This document shows positions 19,882-28,082 of a stretch of DNA of 64,000 nt, one piece after another. The notes under the pieces are model-generated. The model was not told the DNA's origin. It ran no database searches and worked only from the letters and a program-made list of their open reading frames with translations. Numbering within the stretch: position 1 is the stretch's first letter; each line of letters begins with the position of its first letter. The DNA is from Vitrella brassicaformis CCMP3155 (lineage: Eukaryota > Protista > Chromerida): positions 558,001 through 622,000 of the forward strand of contig CDMY01000243.1 in NCBI GenBank assembly GCA_001179505.1, read 5' to 3'. Both the position numbers and the translations under genes were made by a program.

Positions 19882-21375
19882 TCAGTCGATGCCCAGCGAC
19901 ACGAACAGGCCGGTTCTCGACAGATGCCCTACCTGGCCCCACGCGAATTGGCAGTCCTGGTCGCCCAGATGCTCGTTGAAGCCCTTGACCACCCCACCCC
20001 CCACACCGTACTGGGCCGCCTCGTCCAGCCGGGCACGGTGCACCACCTCACGCACACCCGTCATGCTCACCACCTGTCCCCCACTGTCGCGGACGGCGAA
20101 GCACTGCAGCGGCACCCGCACCATCACGCCGCCCACACTGGCCATGCCGCCCACCACCTCCCTGTTGCTGCTCGTCCGGGTCGCTGCCGACTTGACGAAG
20201 TGGTTGACGGCCGCACGCACGCGGCGCCTCAGCACCGAGTCGGCGATGAGGTACTCGTCGATGGCCGCCACAGCGGCGGGGGGCTCGTGCAGGAAGGCGC
20301 CGATCTTCCATCCGACGGCCTCAGCCTCGTGTGGGCCGAATGCCATGTTGGATGGGGAGGGGTGGGGGTGGGCGCCGTCGTGGTGGGGGGCGAGGGGCAG
20401 CAGACGGGCGAGAAGCATCGAGTGGTCGCGCTGGGGGGCGAGGGCGCCGTTGATGGCCGACATGACGACCTCGGACAGCTCACTCAGCACTGTGGCGTAC
20501 TCGGTCAGCACCATCCCACGAGAGAGGCGGTCGCCCTCGGTGGCTGTGGGCATGCGGGCGATGGATGCGGCCGCCCCGAACCGCAGCAGCGTCTGGATGG
20601 TGGTCTTGTAGTCCTCGATCCGTCTTGAGTGCCACTCGTATTGCCCCTCTACATGTTGTTCAAATTGCTGCAGAAACACGTGCCGATAGAGCCCGTCGGC
20701 AGCATCTGCGAGTGGTGTCATGTTGGGCCGGTTCGGCCTGCCTCTGTTGACGTCGTCGGCCGTGAGCTGGCGGCACAGCCACTCGAGCACCCAGGGGAAG
20801 CCGTGGTCTGCCGCCACGTGCAGTGGCGTTTGGCCGAAGGTGTCTGTTGCTGTCATGTCGGCTCCGTGGCTGGCAATGACCTCCAGCGCCGTCACGTTGC
20901 CCGCAAGAATCGCCACTTGGATGGGGCTGTTCGTTTGTCCGCCTGCATTGACGTCCGCACCGCCGTCGATGAGTGCCTTGAGGATGTCATGCTGCAGCTG
21001 TCGGGAGGACCAGGGCGGAAGGACGACGGGCACTCGCCCTTGTGTGTAAGGCATATCATAGGCGCCGCTCGCAGAGAGGGATGGTATGTTTGTTGGGCTG
21101 TCGATGGCGAACGACAGGCAGCTGTATCGCCGGGTCGGGGCTGCTGTGGTGCCGCGGACGCGCAGGCCGCCAATGGATCTCGGGTCGGCTCCTTGCTGGA
21201 TCAGCTGTGTGACTTGCCCAAGTGTGAAGCTGCGGCGAATGCAGCCCTCCAACAGCTGCCGGCTGAAAGGACTGACGCCCTCATCGGGGACGATGTCGAC
21301 GTCGTCCAGCCCCTTCCAGCAGTATGGCACCAATTCCGGAAGTGCTTGCGATGCAGTCAACGACGACTGGTCCAT
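19882..21375 (-). CDS. Intronless ankyrin-repeat protein of the Vitrella-type expanded family. The ORF stays open upstream to an ATG at 21603.
   Basis: Ankyrin repeats: ALIDGGADVNA, SPIQVAILAGNVTALEVIASHGAD, FGQTPLHVAA, MTPLADAA. Characteristic C-terminal region MAFGPHEAEAVGWKIGAFL...HLGDQDCQF. Confidence 0.85.
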   Translation of the reverse strand: MDQSSLTASQALPELVPYCWKGLDDVDIVPDEGVSPFSRQLLEGCIRRSFTLGQVTQLIQQGADPRSIGGLRVRGTTAAPTRRYSCLSFAIDSPTNIPSLSASGAYDMPYTQGRVPVVLPPWSSRQLQHDILKALIDGGADVNAGGQTNSPIQVAILAGNVTALEVIASHGADMTATDTFGQTPLHVAADHGFPWVLEWLCRQLTADDVNRGRPNRPNMTPLADAADGLYRHVFLQQFEQHVEGQYEWHSRRIEDYKTTIQTLLRFGAAASIARMPTATEGDRLSRGMVLTEYATVLSELSEVVMSAINGALAPQRDHSMLLARLLPLAPHHDGAHPHPSPSNMAFGPHEAEAVGWKIGAFLHEPPAAVAAIDEYLIADSVLRRRVRAAVNHFVKSAATRTSSNREVVGGMASVGGVMVRVPLQCFAVRDSGGQVVSMTGVREVVHRARLDEAAQYGVGGGVVKGFNEHLGDQDCQFAWGQVGHLSRTGLFVSLGID

Positions 21376-21439: not shown

Positions 21440-22883
21440 ATGTCGTTTGTGAGCCGTTTCGCCTCGCCCCTCTCGGCCCTGTCGCCCGTCATGAGCCGGC
21501 GGGTGGCTTTCCCGTTGGCGTCGCAGCACCGGTCATTCACCAAGATGTCGTCCTTCACCAAGCCGCCGGTGCGCGTGGCGGTGACGGGAGCTGCCGGCGC
21601 CATCGGCTACGCCCTCATTTTCCGCGTCGCGTCAGGGCAGATGCTGGGCGCAGATCATCCCGTCATACTGCACCTCATCGAAGTCCCGCAGGTGGGTGCG
21701 CCGTGCCGTGCAGGCAGCAGACAGACAGCCCGACAAGCAGCCGACAGCACAGCAGCCTTCCTGTCAAATGATTTGTGTGTCATGGCTTGGCTTGGCTTGA
21801 CAATGTCAGGTGGAGGCGAATTTGAAGGGCGTCAAGATGGAGCTGGACGACTGCGCCTTCCCGACCCTGAAGGGCGTGGTGTGCACGAGCGACCTGGAGG
21901 TGGGCTTCGGCGACTGCGAGTACGCCATGCTGGTCGGCGCCAAACCCAGAGGGCCAGGCATGGAAAGATCGGACCTGCTCAAGGTAGGCTACCTACACAC
22001 GTGGACACACATTATATGCAGGCCCTTCGATGAACAGACACACGTACACTCCTTCCCTTGCTGCATTGTTTATGTTGTGTCTCGTGTGTCGGTCGTTGTG
22101 GTCAGGACAACGGCAAGATCTTCACGGGCCAGGGCAAGGCGTTGAGTGCGGCTGCCAAGCCGAGTTGCAAGGTGCTGGTGGTGGGCAACCCCGCCAACAC
22201 CAACGCCCTCATCGCCGCCCACAACAGCAAGAACATCCCCTTCGAGAACTTCACCGCCATGACCCGCCTGGACCACAACCGGGCCCTGACGCAGATAGCC
22301 CAGAAGGCCAAGTGCGACGTGGAGGACATCGACAAGTTCTGCGTGTGGGGTAACCACAGCCCCACCATGTACCCGGACCTCTCACACGCAACCATCAAGG
22401 GCACACCAGCCAAACAAGGTACGGACAGACGGCCGAATGCTGGGATGGATGGATGCACACCGACAAACGCACACACCTCGGTCGTGTCGTGTGGTGTCCG
22501 TCCTTCTCCCTTGCTTCCCTTGGTCAGTGATCAACGACGAGTCGTGGATCAAGAACGAGTTCTACCCCACAGTGCAGAAGCGCGGTGCGGCGGTCATCGA
22601 CGCGCGCAAGGCGTCCTCAGCGGCGTCGGCGGCGAACGGTGCTTTGGAGCACATCCGCGACTGGGCGTTGGGGACGGGTGGCAAGTGGACGTCGATGGGG
22701 GTGGTGTCTGACGACACGTACGGGCTGCAGAAGGGGCTGATCTACAGCTACCCCGTCACGTGTGCCAACGGGGTGTGGACCAAGGTGACGGGGCTGCCCG
22801 TCGACCAGCACAGCCACGACATGATGCAGCACACACTCAACGAGCTCGTCCAGGAGAGGGACATGGTCAAGGACATGCTGTGA
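21440..22883 (+). CDS. MDH: NAD-dependent malate dehydrogenase (MDH1/bacterial type-2 family) with an N-terminal presequence; 4 exons
   Basis: Exons 21440-21691, 21810-21983, 22106-22418 and 22527-22883 splice in frame. Motifs [57 protein letters not shown]. Confidence 0.96.
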
Positions 22884-23719: not shown

Positions 23720-24739
23720 ATGAACGGCATCTCGGACGCCCTCCTGGAGCGCGTGGCGTCGCACCTCGTGCCTCGAGCACTGGCGTCCCTGTCCATGGCC
23801 AGCCGCAGGTGCGCCCGAGTGCGGCGCACAGATCTGTGGAGGGAGCACTTCGATGGGGAGGCGCGCAGATGGGACTTGTCCGCGCAGGTGGAGGGCTCCG
23901 AAGGGGAGGCCGTCATCTTCTGCCTCGAGTGAGCCACTGGTTGTCCCTGTTGATCGACACGACGAACTGACTATTTGCCTTGTCCGTCATGGTGTGTTGT
24001 GCAGCGGTGCGAGTGTGTTTCATGTGCTGAAGGTGCTGTCACTCGAGCGGCACCTGGCTGCCCTGCGGCTTGGCGATGTGGTGTGCTTCGGCAATTATCG
24101 CGATAGTGGCGCAGCGATAGTCACTGAGGACTTCACGCTGATTGAGAACCCTGACCATGGAGGTATGTCTGTGCTGTGCTGTGCCAAGGGTGCTCACTCC
24201 ATTGTTGCTTCTATTTGTTCCTCTGCTGTGCTGTGCTGTGCTATCTATGATGTGTGTGCATCGGTTGGCCAGGCGAGGGTTTCCTGACGGTGCCTCTGCG
24301 AGTGACGCGGCTGTTCCCTGATCCCCTCGCCAAGTACCGACACATACGAGTAGGACCATCAAGAGCACTGACCCCCTAGGACAGACACAGCACACTTGTG
24401 CCGTTCGTTTGCTTGCAGGTGTGCACGATGGAGTTTGCTCCCTCCTCGCCGGCCCTGTGTGCCCTCCTGCGCGCCCCTTCCCCGCTTCCATCAGCCGATT
24501 CGTTCGCCGCCCTGCGGGCCGTCGAGTACCACCTGGTGTGGAGCATGGAGGCCGACAAACAGGTGGAGGATGGCGGGCCCACCCAAGCAGCTGCCGGTGT
24601 GGGGGCGGTGCTGCGTGGTGCCCCTGACTTGGTGCTGGAGGTGCGGCTGGTGGACGATAGTGTCGTTCAGAAGAGATTTGTGATAGAGGCGGGAGTGGTT
24701 GACGCGGTCAGGGAGTGGCTGGGGGCACTGACAGAGTAG
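23720..24739 (+). CDS. Hypothetical protein with an F-box-like N-terminus; 4 exons
   Basis: MNGISDALLERVASHLVPRALASLSMASRRCARV...LWREHF is F-box-like. Exons ~23720-23928, 24005-24162, 24274-24349 and 24419-24739 join in frame. Confidence 0.6.
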
Positions 24740-24960: not shown

Positions 24961-27702
24961 TCACGCACTCATGTTGGCCACCTTCCGTTGCCTACGCGCG
25001 TCATCCGCCTCCTCATGGCGCCAGAATGGATCATCCAGCACTGGCCCCGCTGGTTTGGGGCCTTTTCTAAGGTGTGGTGGCCGTGCGGTGGGCACTCTCT
25101 GCGATGTGGTGCTCTGGATGGTCCAGTCCGTGGCGGGGTCGTCATCGACCAGCACCTAATCAGGAGGCCGGGCCGGGCCGGGCCATACACACATACACAC
25201 ATACACACACATATCCCGTGTCTGTCTGCATTGGGGAAGGGCCTGGCCTCTCTCGTGTGCAGCCCAGCCCTGGTTGATACCTCTGCGTGTGGGTTGTCGT
25301 AGCATACGATCTCTTTGAGCAGGCGGATGCCCGACACACGCTTGCCTAATGAATGCCGTCCGTGTCCAAAGGAAAGAGAGAGACACAGACAGACAGACAG
25401 ACAGCCATTTGTTTGTGCCGTGGATAGCTAGATGCAAGGAACGCTCGTCCTTGTCTGCTGACTGACCTTCGCATCTGTGTATCGTTTGCAAGTTCTCATC
25501 TTCGCAGTAGAAGGGATACGCCTGGCCATCGATTGACACACTCACTGGTCGGGTCGATGGGCTCTCTGTGTGCATTCATTGTGTGGGTACCTTGGACCAG
25601 TCGAGGAAGGCATCGAGCACTCGCTGACGCGTCTCCGGGTCAGACTGACCAGACAGACAGAGGCACACCACACCATGAATGTCAGTGATGTCGTGTGTGC
25701 GGAGTGGACCTCGTATCTGTGCATGAGTGTGTAGCAGCTGCCGCAGAGTCTGAACCAGCTCCAAAAGTGAGACGCACGCATCGTGTTGATGCTCCTCAGA
25801 CCCAGCGACCACTGGTCAGCATAGCTAAGGCCTTAGCAACGGCAAGGCAAATGCACACATGTCATCGATGTGTGCTAGATAGATGTTTGGCCCCTCCTTG
25901 TCTGTCTGCATTGCAGTGAACCTCTGAAGTCTATGGTGCTTCGTATGAGGTGCTGTCGGAACTCAGGCACGTACAAACTGTTGATGTCCGCCATCGGGAT
26001 GCCTGCAGTGCAGTGCAAGCAACACACACGGATGAGTCTCCCACGCCTCACCGATCCATTCATCTATCCCGGAGACTGTCGGCTGCTGACCTGCCCCGCC
26101 ATGGCCGCCCTTGAACCGAAGACCAGGCCTGAAACAACCAACGAACAAATCAATGAACAGCCAAACATCCGAATGCCATCCATCAATGTGGTTGGTTGCG
26201 TGGCCGACTGTGCTGACTGACCCTCTCCAAATGGTCATGCGTCGGATCTCCTCGAGCACGCTATTGTGTTGTGTGAGCTGGTCCATCGTCGGATCCGTGA
26301 CAGCGGCGAAGTCCGGGCATACGTACGTGATGAACCCTGTCAGGTTGTCGTGCCTGCAAAGAAAGAAAGAAACCAGCCAGCCAGGACAATATAGCAAGGA
26401 ATACGACTCTCTTGCTCACATGTAGAAGTCGGTCTGCGGCAGCAGCGTCGTCTCCTTCTTGTACTCGCCACCCTTGAGCTTGCACGCGTACGGCGCTGGA
26501 CGAAAAACACAGTCCCACACACGGCGGTGACATGGGCCGCTTCACCTACCTACCTCTGAAGAGCTGGAACTTCATGTAGGGATGTCTGTCGACCACGTCA
26601 CGCAGCTCCGGCTGGGATGCCCCCCTCGTGTCGGCACCGTCGGCAGTGTCCGGCAGCCCCGATGCGGTGTGGTCTATCTGCATGGTTTTGGTGTCGAGCA
26701 GGTGGATGGCGTTGAGCAGCGTCGGCAGCACCTCACACTGACGCTCGTAGTTGCTGAACTGCATACGAACGGACAAAGGTCCCCGTAGTCCGTGTTGCAC
26801 TACACAGACATCCCCACGTCCAGGCCTCCTGTAGGTACCTGTATCTGTGGGTACATGACGTGCACGGAGAACTTGTCAGGGTTGGCGGAAGCCAAAACCT
26901 GTGGCCAGTGCAATCCAATCCTCACACAAAGAAAGCAAGACTGCTGCCCGGTATCGGTCGATGTGTGCACGTGCCAGCCGCTCATACCACCGGCTCGAGC
27001 TGGTCGTCGTCAACACTGAAGAACCAACTCACCTGAGGAAAGCAATACAATACCCGCAGACGGGATGGGGATGGCGATGGGCTGCCGTGTGTGCATCCTC
27101 GAGTACTCTCTCACTCACCAGGTGTTGCAGGGACGAAAGAAACCTGTTGCCATGCTTCTTCATCGGCTTCTTCCTGATGCAAAACACAAAACTCCCACAT
27201 CCATCCAGAATGTGCCTCCTTCCATTGCCCAGCCCCCGACCGACCGCCTACCCGTCCAGGTCGAAGTAGAGGACCCGCGGATGGTGCTCGGCCGCCACCT
27301 CATAGAGCCCCGTGAGGTAACCCATCTTGTGCCGGCTGTACACGTGGTCCCAGAAGGACGCATGCGACGGAAAGTACGAGTACTTCTGGGTGGTCACGAG
27401 TTCCCCCTTCTTGTTGGGCAGCTTCCTCAAGTAGCTCGACCCCACCCACACCGCACTCCCCGGCGGTTTCGCCTGCAGCAGCTCCTCCTTGGTTGGAAAG
27501 AAGACCAGGCCATCCTCGTGACACTGGAAACCCTGCACAGATGGCAATTTCAGGAGATGGAACAGGCAGACAGATGTGCAGGCGCGAAGATCTGTGGGCG
27601 TACCCTGCCTACGAGGTGAGGGAAGCTAGATGCGCTCCTATGCCATGATGGTCTGGCTCTCAGTGCTCCAACCGGCAACCCAGATGAGAAGACGCGCCTC
27701 AT
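24961..27702 (-). CDS. Archaeo-eukaryotic primase (PrimPol/NCLDV-herpesvirus clade-like) with a PriCT-2-like C-terminal domain and a predicted mitochondrial presequence; ~13 exons
   Basis: Exons 27702-27604, 27532-27252, 27173-27119, 27032-26988 and 26898-26839 onward splice in frame. They give motif I LYEV...PRVLYFDLDG, motif II DKFSVHVMYP and motif III VVDRHPYMKFQLFR.PYACK. The C-terminal part reads RASHFWSWFRLCG...VLDAFLDWSKAYPFYCEDEN...SGIRLLKEIVCYDNP. Stop at 24961. Confidence 0.82.
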
Positions 27703-28082
27703 GACGTCATGAATTCGATCGGCCATGACCCATGGTGCGCGAAACGCTTGCAAGCCAGGGGGCGTCTCGCGCGTCTCTCCTTGTGCAACCTATGCAATGA
27801 ATGTCTTTCCTTCTATTTCTTCTTTGAAGCTCGAGACGCTCGAGGCTCCATCGATGGAGCCCTCTAATGTGACAAATAAGATGACTTAATGCATGACGAC
27901 CGAAAAAGCAGGAAAAGAAGCATGTCTCAAGTTCCACACGTAAACCAGGATTCGGCTACATAGATAGTTTACTGCATGAAGGCGAAGTACCAAAAAAGCA
28001 GCAAAGAGCACCGGATTCGACACATCCACAGAGAAAGAGTACATACATGTAGCAGCAAGTCGGTCAGTCAGGCTGCGGGCAT

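Follow-up and report, generated by a model that had tools for sequence, protein, structure and literature searches.

An intron-rich nuclear gene of Vitrella brassicaformis encodes an AEP primase with a PriCT-2-like module and a presequence-like leader

The window, a stretch of 64,000 nucleotides of the Vitrella brassicaformis genome, carries on its minus strand, at 24961-27726, a gene of 15 short exons and 14 introns that reads as a single frame of 528 codons plus stop (1587 nt), from the ATG at 27726 to the stop at 24961, with a second in-frame ATG at 27702 (Table 1). All 14 introns are of the GT...AG type and measure 58-125 nt each. This is a nuclear V. brassicaformis gene rich in spliceosomal introns; the genes adjoining it are ordinary host genes, and the base composition is host-like. 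An earlier reading, made from the letters of the DNA only (hereafter the sequence-only reading), had quoted a series of peptide pieces, all of which lie on the minus strand of the window. It had also proposed that about 13 exons splice into one protein, and while the single spliced protein stands, the GT-AG model brings the number of exons to 15.

The same gene is represented in the databases by CEL96692.1 (P0001, 428 aa), which is 100% identical over exon 2, comprises exons 1-12 and then runs into intron 12 up to a stop at 25576. Our model corrects this public version, from which three 3′ exons are missing and whose protein end is intron-derived. An independent contig from the genome of a relative (L012) shows the same AG/GT positions and phases at exons 2, 4, 5, 6, 7, 10, 11, and 12, and the likeness to the relatives is far above chance, since exon 2 alone retrieves them by tblastn with E from 1e-13 to 5e-17. 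An extra intron (25709-25645, minus strand) splits the stretch that holds the RASHFWSWFRLCG piece; as the relatives support the frame of the sequence-only reading together with this intron, that frame is the right one. A single long exon in another frame (25811-25591) also gives a closed frame and was rejected, as both the relatives and L012 favor the former. Exons 13 and 14 are backed by similarity to relatives. Exon 15 is without homolog support and is weakly favored by codon usage (codon score 0.14, vs. −0.15 for the read-through frame); reading through the exon-14 donor would give an alternative end at 24969. The protein ends 65 codons past the C-terminal module. Pfam scans of the raw ORF pieces and of single exons returned no matches because the exons are too short.

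Table 1. Features of the primase gene, in coordinates of the window.
Feature	Position	Strand	Evidence
Whole gene, first ATG to stop	24961..27726	-	Phases, splice sites, frame closure; identity to P0001 over exons 1-12; L012 boundaries
Exon 1: leader, 41 codons, basic, Ser-rich	27604..27726	-	Composition; predicted model
Exon 2: N-terminal half of AEP core, ends in motif I (YFDLD, 27254-27268)	27252..27532	-	D132/D134 invariant; L012 boundaries and phase
Exon 3	27119..27173	-	Within P0001; splice model
Exon 4	26988..27032	-	Splice model; boundaries common to L012
Exon 5: motif II (KFSVH, 26860-26874)	26839..26898	-	S179/H181 invariant; PrimPol motif II alignment; L012 boundaries
Exon 6: motif III at its end, with invariant Asp and Tyr (26555-26596)	26554..26758	-	D245, Y249, R256 invariant; L012 boundaries
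Exon 7: motif III continued, invariant Lys (K262)	26420..26495	-	Alignment; L012 boundaries
Exon 8: end of structured AEP core	26222..26353	-	Confident structure to about residue 324; domain bounds
AEP core as a whole	26222-27532	-	Domain bounds
Exon 9: Gly-rich linker, predicted disordered	26091..26128	-	pLDDT below 50, residues 325-346
Exon 10: linker and start of C-terminal module	25922..26002	-	Splice model; L012 boundaries
Exon 11: first PriCT-2-like helices, invariant W-x-W-F-R (25749-25763)	25710..25831	-	Alignment; L012 boundaries
Exon 12: PriCT-2-like module, invariant Trp of '...DWSK'	25591..25644	-	Alignment; L012 boundaries
Exon 13 (unannotated): PriCT-2-like module, invariant E-N	25467..25521	-	Relatives; splice model
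Exon 14 (unannotated): last helix of module, invariant D-N-P	25281..25345	-	61% identity to relative P0008
Exon 15 (unannotated, the least certain exon): stop, preceded by a non-conserved tail	24961..25155	-	Codon score

The encoded protein is an AEP primase-polymerase of the PrimPol/NCLDV-herpesvirus clade. This is the assignment that the sequence-only reading had made from YFDLD, KFSVH and a third motif, and all three are present in that order. Among 14 sequences, with 29-38% identity to the Vitrella protein, residues D132/D134, S179/H181, D245/Y249, R256, and K262 are invariant; motif III consists of an Asp followed by an Arg...Lys stretch and runs from the end of exon 6 into the beginning of exon 7. 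In the family profile, motifs I and II align to motifs I and II of PrimPol, and comparison of this profile with the PDB returned human PrimPol (5L2X/7JK1) with E 2e-5 across motifs I-II. The Foldseek results agree: against the PDB, the AF2 model of the Vitrella protein (pLDDT 77.7) matched PrimPol first (E 7.8e-8), followed by VACV D5/MPXV E5, HSV UL52, and ASFV C962R, and the AF2 model of the relative P0012 gave the same order. The two models (pLDDT 77.7 and 79.4) obtained 25-33 PDB matches at E <= 1e-3, and every match listed is PrimPol, D5/E5, UL52, or C962R. Exon 2 alone gave only a chance match in the PDB, and there was no match in PHROGs, nor in NCBIfam for the core family. In Pfam, AEP_C962R (PF23162) matched 9 of the 14 members at E <= 1 (best E 3.7e-4); its best score in our own scan was 21.2 bits against a gathering cutoff of 23, and a precomputed PF23162.2 match for P0001 is marked 'faint'. 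The AEP call had been made before, since the automatic naming in UniProt already lists the Vitrella protein as a C962R-like AEP domain protein.

Beyond the linker, the C-terminal module is predicted to be helical, with pLDDT ~90 and 4-6 confident helices in the models of the Vitrella protein and P0012. The W-x-W-F-R stretch and one further Trp are invariant in it, and no Cys or His is invariant among 9 sequences. A module that is all-helical and free of invariant Cys/His bears out the earlier remark that a UL52-type Zn finger is absent. The sequence-only reading had called this module PriCT-2-like, and the name is supported: PriCT_2 is the only Pfam family that recurs on the module. At E <= 10 it matched 4 of 9 modules scanned in isolation (best E 0.005) and 2 of the 14 proteins scanned at full length, each time on one and the same stretch, which in the relatives begins at exon 11, and the full-length fold superposes on a giant-virus protein. 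The Pfam matches, however, never reach the cutoff, the best scoring 17.4 bits (E 0.0058) where 22 is needed. In comparisons of the full-length fold with Klosneuvirinae proteins, ~465 of 470 columns were aligned (whole-protein score), and a Catovirus protein, listed in UniProt as 'Primase C-terminal 2 domain-containing protein', matched with E 2.4e-10 over 463 columns. A profile of the isolated module found noise only in the PDB. None of the 14 members has a helicase Pfam match and no helicase gene adjoins in the window, in keeping with the claim that no helicase is fused.

The Vitrella protein is a member of a small orthologous family of chromerids, dinoflagellates, and Rhytidocystis: we found relatives in Chromera and Symbiodinium, in marine transcriptomes, and in the apicomplexan Rhytidocystis, and they are transcribed. 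When the profile search was widened to 5.8 billion proteins, it returned the same 11 family members and nothing else, even at E <= 1. In core Apicomplexa we found no relative; the Toxoplasma ortholog that the sequence-only reading had counted on was not detected, nor was one in Plasmodium. Because core apicomplexans keep mtDNA without a detected ortholog, the primase cannot be universal for myzozoan mtDNA. The viral or plasmid ancestry proposed earlier has support in the fold but no counterpart in sequence, as none of the pattern matches in IMG/VR viral contigs and 185,579 prokaryote genomes was confirmed as a relative by tblastn. The Symbiodinium relative has 23 introns and shares 0 positions with Vitrella, which is uninformative on ancestry. 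The Vitrella protein seems not to be an ordinary PrimPol ortholog, and the family is an uncharacterized one of a known kind, not a new kind of enzyme. In the literature, we found no prior description of the family, of PrimPol in these lineages, or of Cvel_7585.

The leader had been described as Arg/Ser-rich and acid-free. It is so from the second Met (27702), but from the first ATG it includes two Asp within the first 8 residues. In the model of the Vitrella protein, a short helix is predicted at residues 2-14 and the remainder of the leader is predicted to be disordered, with pLDDT below 50 at residues 14-39. Leaders of the same character are found across the family: in 10 of 14 proteins they measure 26-56 residues, contain 5-13 Arg+Lys and have no hydrophobic core, their acidic residues number 0-5 (0-3 in 9 of the 10), and an Arg just ahead of the conserved core recurs. 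The N-termini of three transcripts are complete, since an in-frame stop lies upstream, and no 12-residue stretch in the 5′-complete transcripts has a Kyte-Doolittle mean above about 1.3. Being basic, almost acid-free and without a signal peptide, the leaders look mitochondrial, and the resemblance to a presequence that had been suggested for Vitrella appears to extend to the whole family. Judged by leader composition, a mitochondrial localization of the primase and a role in priming mtDNA are plausible.

All this can be assembled into a working scheme. The protein, of about 528 residues, begins with a basic leader, which is followed by the AEP core, a Gly-rich linker predicted to be disordered, the PriCT-2-like helices, and finally a short tail. 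In the core, motif I with its DxD and motif III with its Asp would hold the catalytic metals, and the incoming nucleotide would be bound by the motif II His together with the Arg/Lys further downstream. On single-stranded DNA, the core would synthesize a dinucleotide de novo and elongate it. The PriCT-2-like module may steady the initiating nucleotide and the template, as PriL-CTD, PriX, PriCT-1, or the PrimPol Zn finger do elsewhere. With the leader acting as a mitochondrial presequence, the enzyme would prime, and perhaps reprime, the replication of fragmented mtDNA, and its probable partner would be the polymerase POP. This putative mitochondrial polymerase is present in chromerids and dinoflagellates and absent from apicomplexans (PMC6523293), and the distribution of our family matches that of POP. 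According to the same review, the apicomplexan mitochondrial polymerase is uncharacterized, and POP was proposed for chromerids and dinoflagellates from in-silico targeting only (PMC6523293). We lean toward a leader-targeted AEP/PriCT-2-like enzyme that primes mtDNA, probably with POP. Replication of the tiny fragmented myzozoan mtDNA would then gain a concrete candidate, a presequence-bearing primase with a POP-like distribution. A broader scenario can be offered only tentatively: the primase would descend from giant viruses, serve the fragmented mtDNA of chromerids, dinoflagellates, and early-branching apicomplexans with POP as partner, stem from an acquisition separate from that of the kinetoplastid primases PRI1/PRI2, and have been lost with POP toward core Apicomplexa.

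Human PrimPol, which is the best match both by solved structure and by sequence, is active in the nucleus as well as in mitochondria (PMC4538821), which means that residence in one compartment cannot be taken for granted. The Vitrella protein could on these grounds be a PrimPol-like damage-tolerance enzyme, nuclear or dual nuclear/organellar, that reprimes stalled forks and bypasses lesions instead of serving mitochondria as a dedicated replicative primase, and the composition of the leader is also compatible with a disordered N-terminal extension. We consider this rather unlikely, as the family has no UL52-type Zn finger, the defining feature of PrimPol, the match to PrimPol spans only ~110-125 residues at 14-20% identity, and the presequence-like leaders, with their Arg just ahead of the core, recur family-wide.

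An address in the plastid, for example at dinoflagellate plastid minicircles or chromerid plastid DNA, would suit the occurrence of the family in plastid-bearing lineages, yet it seems improbable to us. Plastid import in these lineages requires an N-terminal signal peptide, and no hydrophobic core was found in any 5′-complete transcript, including three ORFs with upstream stops. Minicircle genomes do resemble the kinetoplast precedent (PMC4538821), but the PREX primase-helicase-polymerase already serves the chromerid and apicomplexan plastid (PMC6523293). Finally, the whole-architecture fold is nearest to giant-virus primases and the matching Pfam model carries the name of a viral protein, as might be expected if the gene were a relic of an integrated giant-virus genome, decaying or carried along as a passenger, without host function. 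This explanation is close to refuted by the 14 spliceosomal introns, the boundaries of 8 exons common to a second species and the 23 more introns in Symbiodinium, by the intact frame and invariant catalytic residues in chromerids, dinoflagellates, and Rhytidocystis, by the transcription of the relatives, by host-like neighbors and base composition, and by the lack of a sequence-level relative in IMG/VR.

Placed among known systems, the leader-targeted mtDNA primase that we favor resembles several of them in part. Helical modules right after an AEP core aid dinucleotide formation and DNA binding (PMC5862659, PMC10345425), and it is by analogy to these, namely the PriCT-1/helix-bundle domains in pRN1 ORF904, in RepB', and at the C-terminus of CAPP, and PriL-CTD/PriX, that a role is assigned to exons 11-14; the likeness is one of function and fold class only, our searches having given no direct sequence or structure match. 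Among Pfam models, the nearest to the Vitrella core is PF23162, the N-terminal AEP domain of ASFV C962R, whose fold is common with D5/E5 and UL52. However, ASFV C962R, poxvirus D5/E5, and herpesvirus UL52 are large primase-helicases, unlike the Vitrella protein, and the D5-like NCLDV primase-helicases carry a fused D5_N and SF3 helicase, neither of which is found in the Vitrella protein. The giant-virus primases of Klosneuvirinae, pithovirus, and phycodnavirus are the best whole-protein fold matches, with both domains superposing, and a Terrestrivirus protein matches the Vitrella-family fold with E 1.6e-14 over 465 columns. Identity to them is 12-18%, many of them carry a fused SF2 or SF3 helicase while the Vitrella protein has no such fusion, and in contrast to them the Vitrella gene is intron-rich and host-embedded.

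PrimPol (CCDC111; 5L2X, 7JK1) is the closest solved structure, found by Foldseek at E 8e-8 with a TM to target of 0.5-0.6; nothing else in the PDB matched the family profile in sequence, and it has the three catalytic motifs in common with the family; identity is 14-20%, however, the profile alignment is limited to motifs I-II, and where PrimPol has a C-terminal UL52-like Zn finger the family has a Cys/His-free helical module. The closest counterpart in layout is found in T. brucei, whose mitochondrial PRI1 and PRI2 are AEPs of the NCLDV-herpesvirus clade with PriCT-2 (PMC4538821). Like the Vitrella primase, both are nuclear-encoded and have an AEP domain followed by PriCT-2 (only PriCT-2-like in Vitrella), and they act on an unusual fragmented mtDNA. 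Their localization and essentiality are established, whereas for the Vitrella enzyme a role of the same kind is proposed from the composition of its leader. No kinetoplastid proteins were returned in the family searches, and the kinetoplastid PRI1/PRI2 and the Vitrella family are likely independent acquisitions. The family, with its PriCT-2-like module, adds a eukaryotic case to the few AEP/PriCT-2 architectures found beyond viruses, plasmids, and kinetoplastids, and under the broader scenario above it would represent a second, convergent capture of a virus-type primase by a mitochondrion with an aberrant genome.

The sequence-only reading had placed about 13 short exons of a single protein in this region. 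All the peptide pieces it quoted are carried by the minus strand, and a GT-AG model joins them into one multi-exon gene, with 15 exons rather than 13, in which 14 introns of 58-125 nt, each GT...AG, leave a spliced length of 1587 nt (528 codons plus the stop). The RASHFWSWFRLCG stretch comprises two exons separated by a 65-nt intron, and the frame originally given to it is correct, since relatives have the same motif; a single exon in a differing frame was tried for this segment and rejected. Exons 13 and 14, both of which contain family-invariant columns, were found by tblastn with relatives; P0008, a relative from a marine transcript, shares 61% identity with exon 14. Exon 15 is not conserved. 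Read-through past the exon-14 donor offers an alternative 3′ end, and the codon scores (0.14 for the spliced exon-15 frame versus −0.15 for the read-through) give a mild preference to the spliced form. Introns 13 and 14 contain microsatellites; the CAGA-type run of intron 13 has similar counterparts in further introns of this gene.

Exon 2 served as query in an exhaustive phmmer search, which retrieved a 428-aa protein, 100% identical across this exon, which is the public model CEL96692.1 (UniProt A0A0G4EJL1; P0001) of Vitrella brassicaformis CCMP3155, from a 669-kb contig. This model consists of exons 1-12, after which intron 12 is read as coding, adding four residues and a stop. Because it stops inside this intron, it lacks the final third of the C-terminal module, and the missing exons 13-15 are located in DNA annotated as intergenic. 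The gene seen earlier is therefore confirmed, corrected to 15 exons and to a shortened public model. In what follows, translated exons were searched individually, while whole-protein analyses used P0001 and natural relatives.

Coordinates of the gene, its neighbours and features in relatives (window positions unless a sequence is named)
Feature	Position	Strand	Remark
Ankyrin-repeat gene	~19882-21375		Ank_2 E 1e-9
LDH/MDH-type dehydrogenase gene	~21440-22883
Next annotated gene	end near 24739	opposite
Primase gene	27726-24961	minus	ATG 27726, stop 24961
Second in-frame ATG	27702	minus
CEL96692.1	25576-27726	minus	exons 1-12 plus intron-derived end
Intron 12 read as coding	25576-25590	minus
Exons of the RASHFWSWFRLCG stretch	25831-25710; 25644-25591	minus
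Rejected single exon	25811-25591	minus
Exons 13-15	24961-25521	minus
Intron 13 microsatellite	25385-25400		CAGA-type
Intron 14 microsatellites	25165-25216		GGCCC-type run adjoining (CA/TA)-type run
Read-through open until	24969	minus
OB fold of P0008	L001:1634-1810		residues 531-589
Symbiodinium sp. CCMP2456 orthologue	L010:8001-18944
Orthologue-bearing genomic contig	L012:1-2800		Logan SRR28521185

The introns are common to relatives, because in a 2.8-kb genomic contig with an orthologue (L012, GC 0.59) the counterparts of Vitrella exons 2, 4, 5, 6, 7, 10, 11 and 12 are each preceded by AG and followed by GT at matching positions and phases, despite exon identities of only 35-60%. This contig probably comes from a relative, as yet unsequenced, that is chromerid-like or colpodellid-like. 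In Symbiodinium sp. CCMP2456 the orthologue has 24 exons of ~9-48 codons across 11 kb, and its 23 intron positions all differ from those of Vitrella.

The enzyme identity and architecture of the protein are solid. D132/D134, S179/H181, D245/Y249, R256 and K262 are invariant among the 14 sequences of the family set, whose identity to the Vitrella protein is 29-38%. The family profile matched human PrimPol (5L2X, 7JK1; E 2e-5) across motifs I and II, and Pfam AEP_C962R matched nine of the 14 members, the best at 21.2 bits, below the cutoff of 23. AlphaFold2 models of P0001 (pLDDT 77.7) and of the full-length relative P0012 (pLDDT 79.4) both had human PrimPol as top fold match (E ~8e-8), followed by the VACV D5/MPXV E5 AEP domain, HSV UL52 and ASFV C962R, with no unrelated fold among the matches listed for either. 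Animal-virus proteins (poxvirus D5/E5, HSV UL52, ASFV C962R, mollusc herpesviruses) enter here only as named matches of fold and profile searches. The AEP assignment made from the motifs is thus borne out.

After the core, a disordered Gly-rich linker precedes a confidently predicted helical bundle whose invariants include W-x-W-F-R, another Trp, E-N and D-N-P. No Cys or His of this module is invariant in the family alignment, so the UL52-type Zn finger is absent, as had been stated. When nine modules cut from natural transcripts were run against Pfam, PriCT_2 was the sole recurring family (4/9, best E 0.005), on the same stretch each time and always below its gathering score. The module profile found no match in the PDB. 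Compared with predicted viral structures, the whole protein aligned over ~465/470 columns to Klosneuvirinae proteins, among them one of Terrestrivirus (E 1.6e-14) and a Catovirus protein (E 2.4e-10) bearing the UniProt name "Primase C-terminal 2 domain-containing protein". Given the sub-threshold PriCT_2 matches and this whole-fold match, we call the module PriCT-2-like only; of the earlier interpretation, which is partly supported, enzyme and architecture hold, including a helical module of this kind, and the PriCT-2 label is reduced to a likeness. The protein terminates 65 codons past the module and no family member has a Pfam helicase match, in agreement with the claim that no helicase is fused. 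P0008 carries an additional C-terminal OB fold (Pfam tRNA_anti-codon, E 5.3e-6), and NCBIfam rpa1 matches one member, presumably the same (E 4.5e-6); provided its contig is non-chimeric, this would be a primase fused to an RPA-like ssDNA-binding domain. Weak matches to Pfam Tc-38, a trypanosome kinetoplast-associated protein, by one member each in the module and full-length alignments (E 0.033 and 0.2), are probably noise, though curious beside the kinetoplastid parallel.

Family members occur in Chromera velia (Cvel_7585, P0007), three Symbiodinium species (P0019, P0025, P0026), the agamococcidian apicomplexan Rhytidocystis sp. ex Travisia forbesii (P0004, TSA GHVS; PMC7522995) and marine transcript contigs of ~1.5 kb each. 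Two family members from one sample (L003 and L008, SRR6233162) are 73% identical, being either paralogues of one dinoflagellate or two species. The exhaustive exon-2 search, covering 1.84 billion cluster representatives, gave just 11 matches, about seven of them genuine, and none in Toxoplasma, Plasmodium or other core Apicomplexa. A wider profile search at E ≤ 1 recovered the same family and no other protein, and a pattern-plus-tblastn scan detected, within its reach, no sequence-level relatives in IMG/VR contigs or prokaryote genomes. Our literature search found no publication on this family. The AEP domain had already been flagged automatically by UniProt, and we regard the Vitrella protein as a new and so far uncharacterised addition to a known kind of enzyme.

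Ahead of the conserved core, ten of the 14 proteins carry a leader 26-56 residues long, in which 5-13 residues are Arg or Lys and 0-5 are acidic; in nine of these leaders the acidic count is 0-3. Their 12-residue hydropathy peaks at ~1.3 or less, too low for the core of a signal peptide. Most have an Arg no more than four residues from the invariant Gly at the start of the conserved core. Three transcripts are N-terminally complete, since each has an upstream in-frame stop. In the AlphaFold2 models, residues 2-14 form a short helix, after which the leader is disordered. A basic, acid-poor leader with an N-terminal helix and no signal peptide is what a mitochondrial presequence looks like. In Vitrella the first of two in-frame ATGs adds eight residues, two of them Asp; only with a start at the second is the leader free of acidic residues, and the start that is used affects any targeting prediction.

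The AEP core would make primers de novo and extend them, the leader would direct the protein to the mitochondrion, and the helical module may aid initiation in the manner of PriCT, PriX and PriL-CTD, helical modules that assist this step (PMC5862659, PMC10345425). A mitochondrial role is a reasonable reading, and the distribution of the family parallels that of POP, a putative mitochondrial polymerase present in chromerids and dinoflagellates and missing from apicomplexans (PMC6523293). A rival is a nuclear or dual-compartment repriming enzyme resembling PrimPol, the nearest solved structure; canonical PrimPol, however, has a defining Zn finger that the Vitrella protein lacks. Another is a plastid primase. 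The plastid leader in these lineages is bipartite, unlike the family leaders, which by their pattern look like mitochondrial presequences.

Viral ancestry can also reasonably be inferred, the case for it coming from fold and clade membership only, because no sequence-level viral or prokaryote relative was found within the reach of the scan. That the gene is itself a relic of a virus is nearly excluded by its introns, family-wide conservation, transcribed relatives and host surroundings. Around it lie a TSP1-repeat gene, a PAP2 phosphatase, two genes without Pfam match, the dehydrogenase and the ankyrin gene, which do not make up an integrated viral block; neither a tRNA nor an Rfam match occurs anywhere in the 64-kb window.

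Among known systems, the nearest predicted structures to this putative mitochondrial primase are giant-virus AEP/PriCT-2 primases, and D5-type proteins differ from it in having a helicase. Its build is like that of the kinetoplastid enzymes: Trypanosoma brucei PRI1 and PRI2 are AEPs of the PrimPol/NCLDV-herpesvirus clade with PriCT-2 and are essential to kinetoplast DNA replication (PMC4538821), and the likeness may extend to how the Vitrella protein works.
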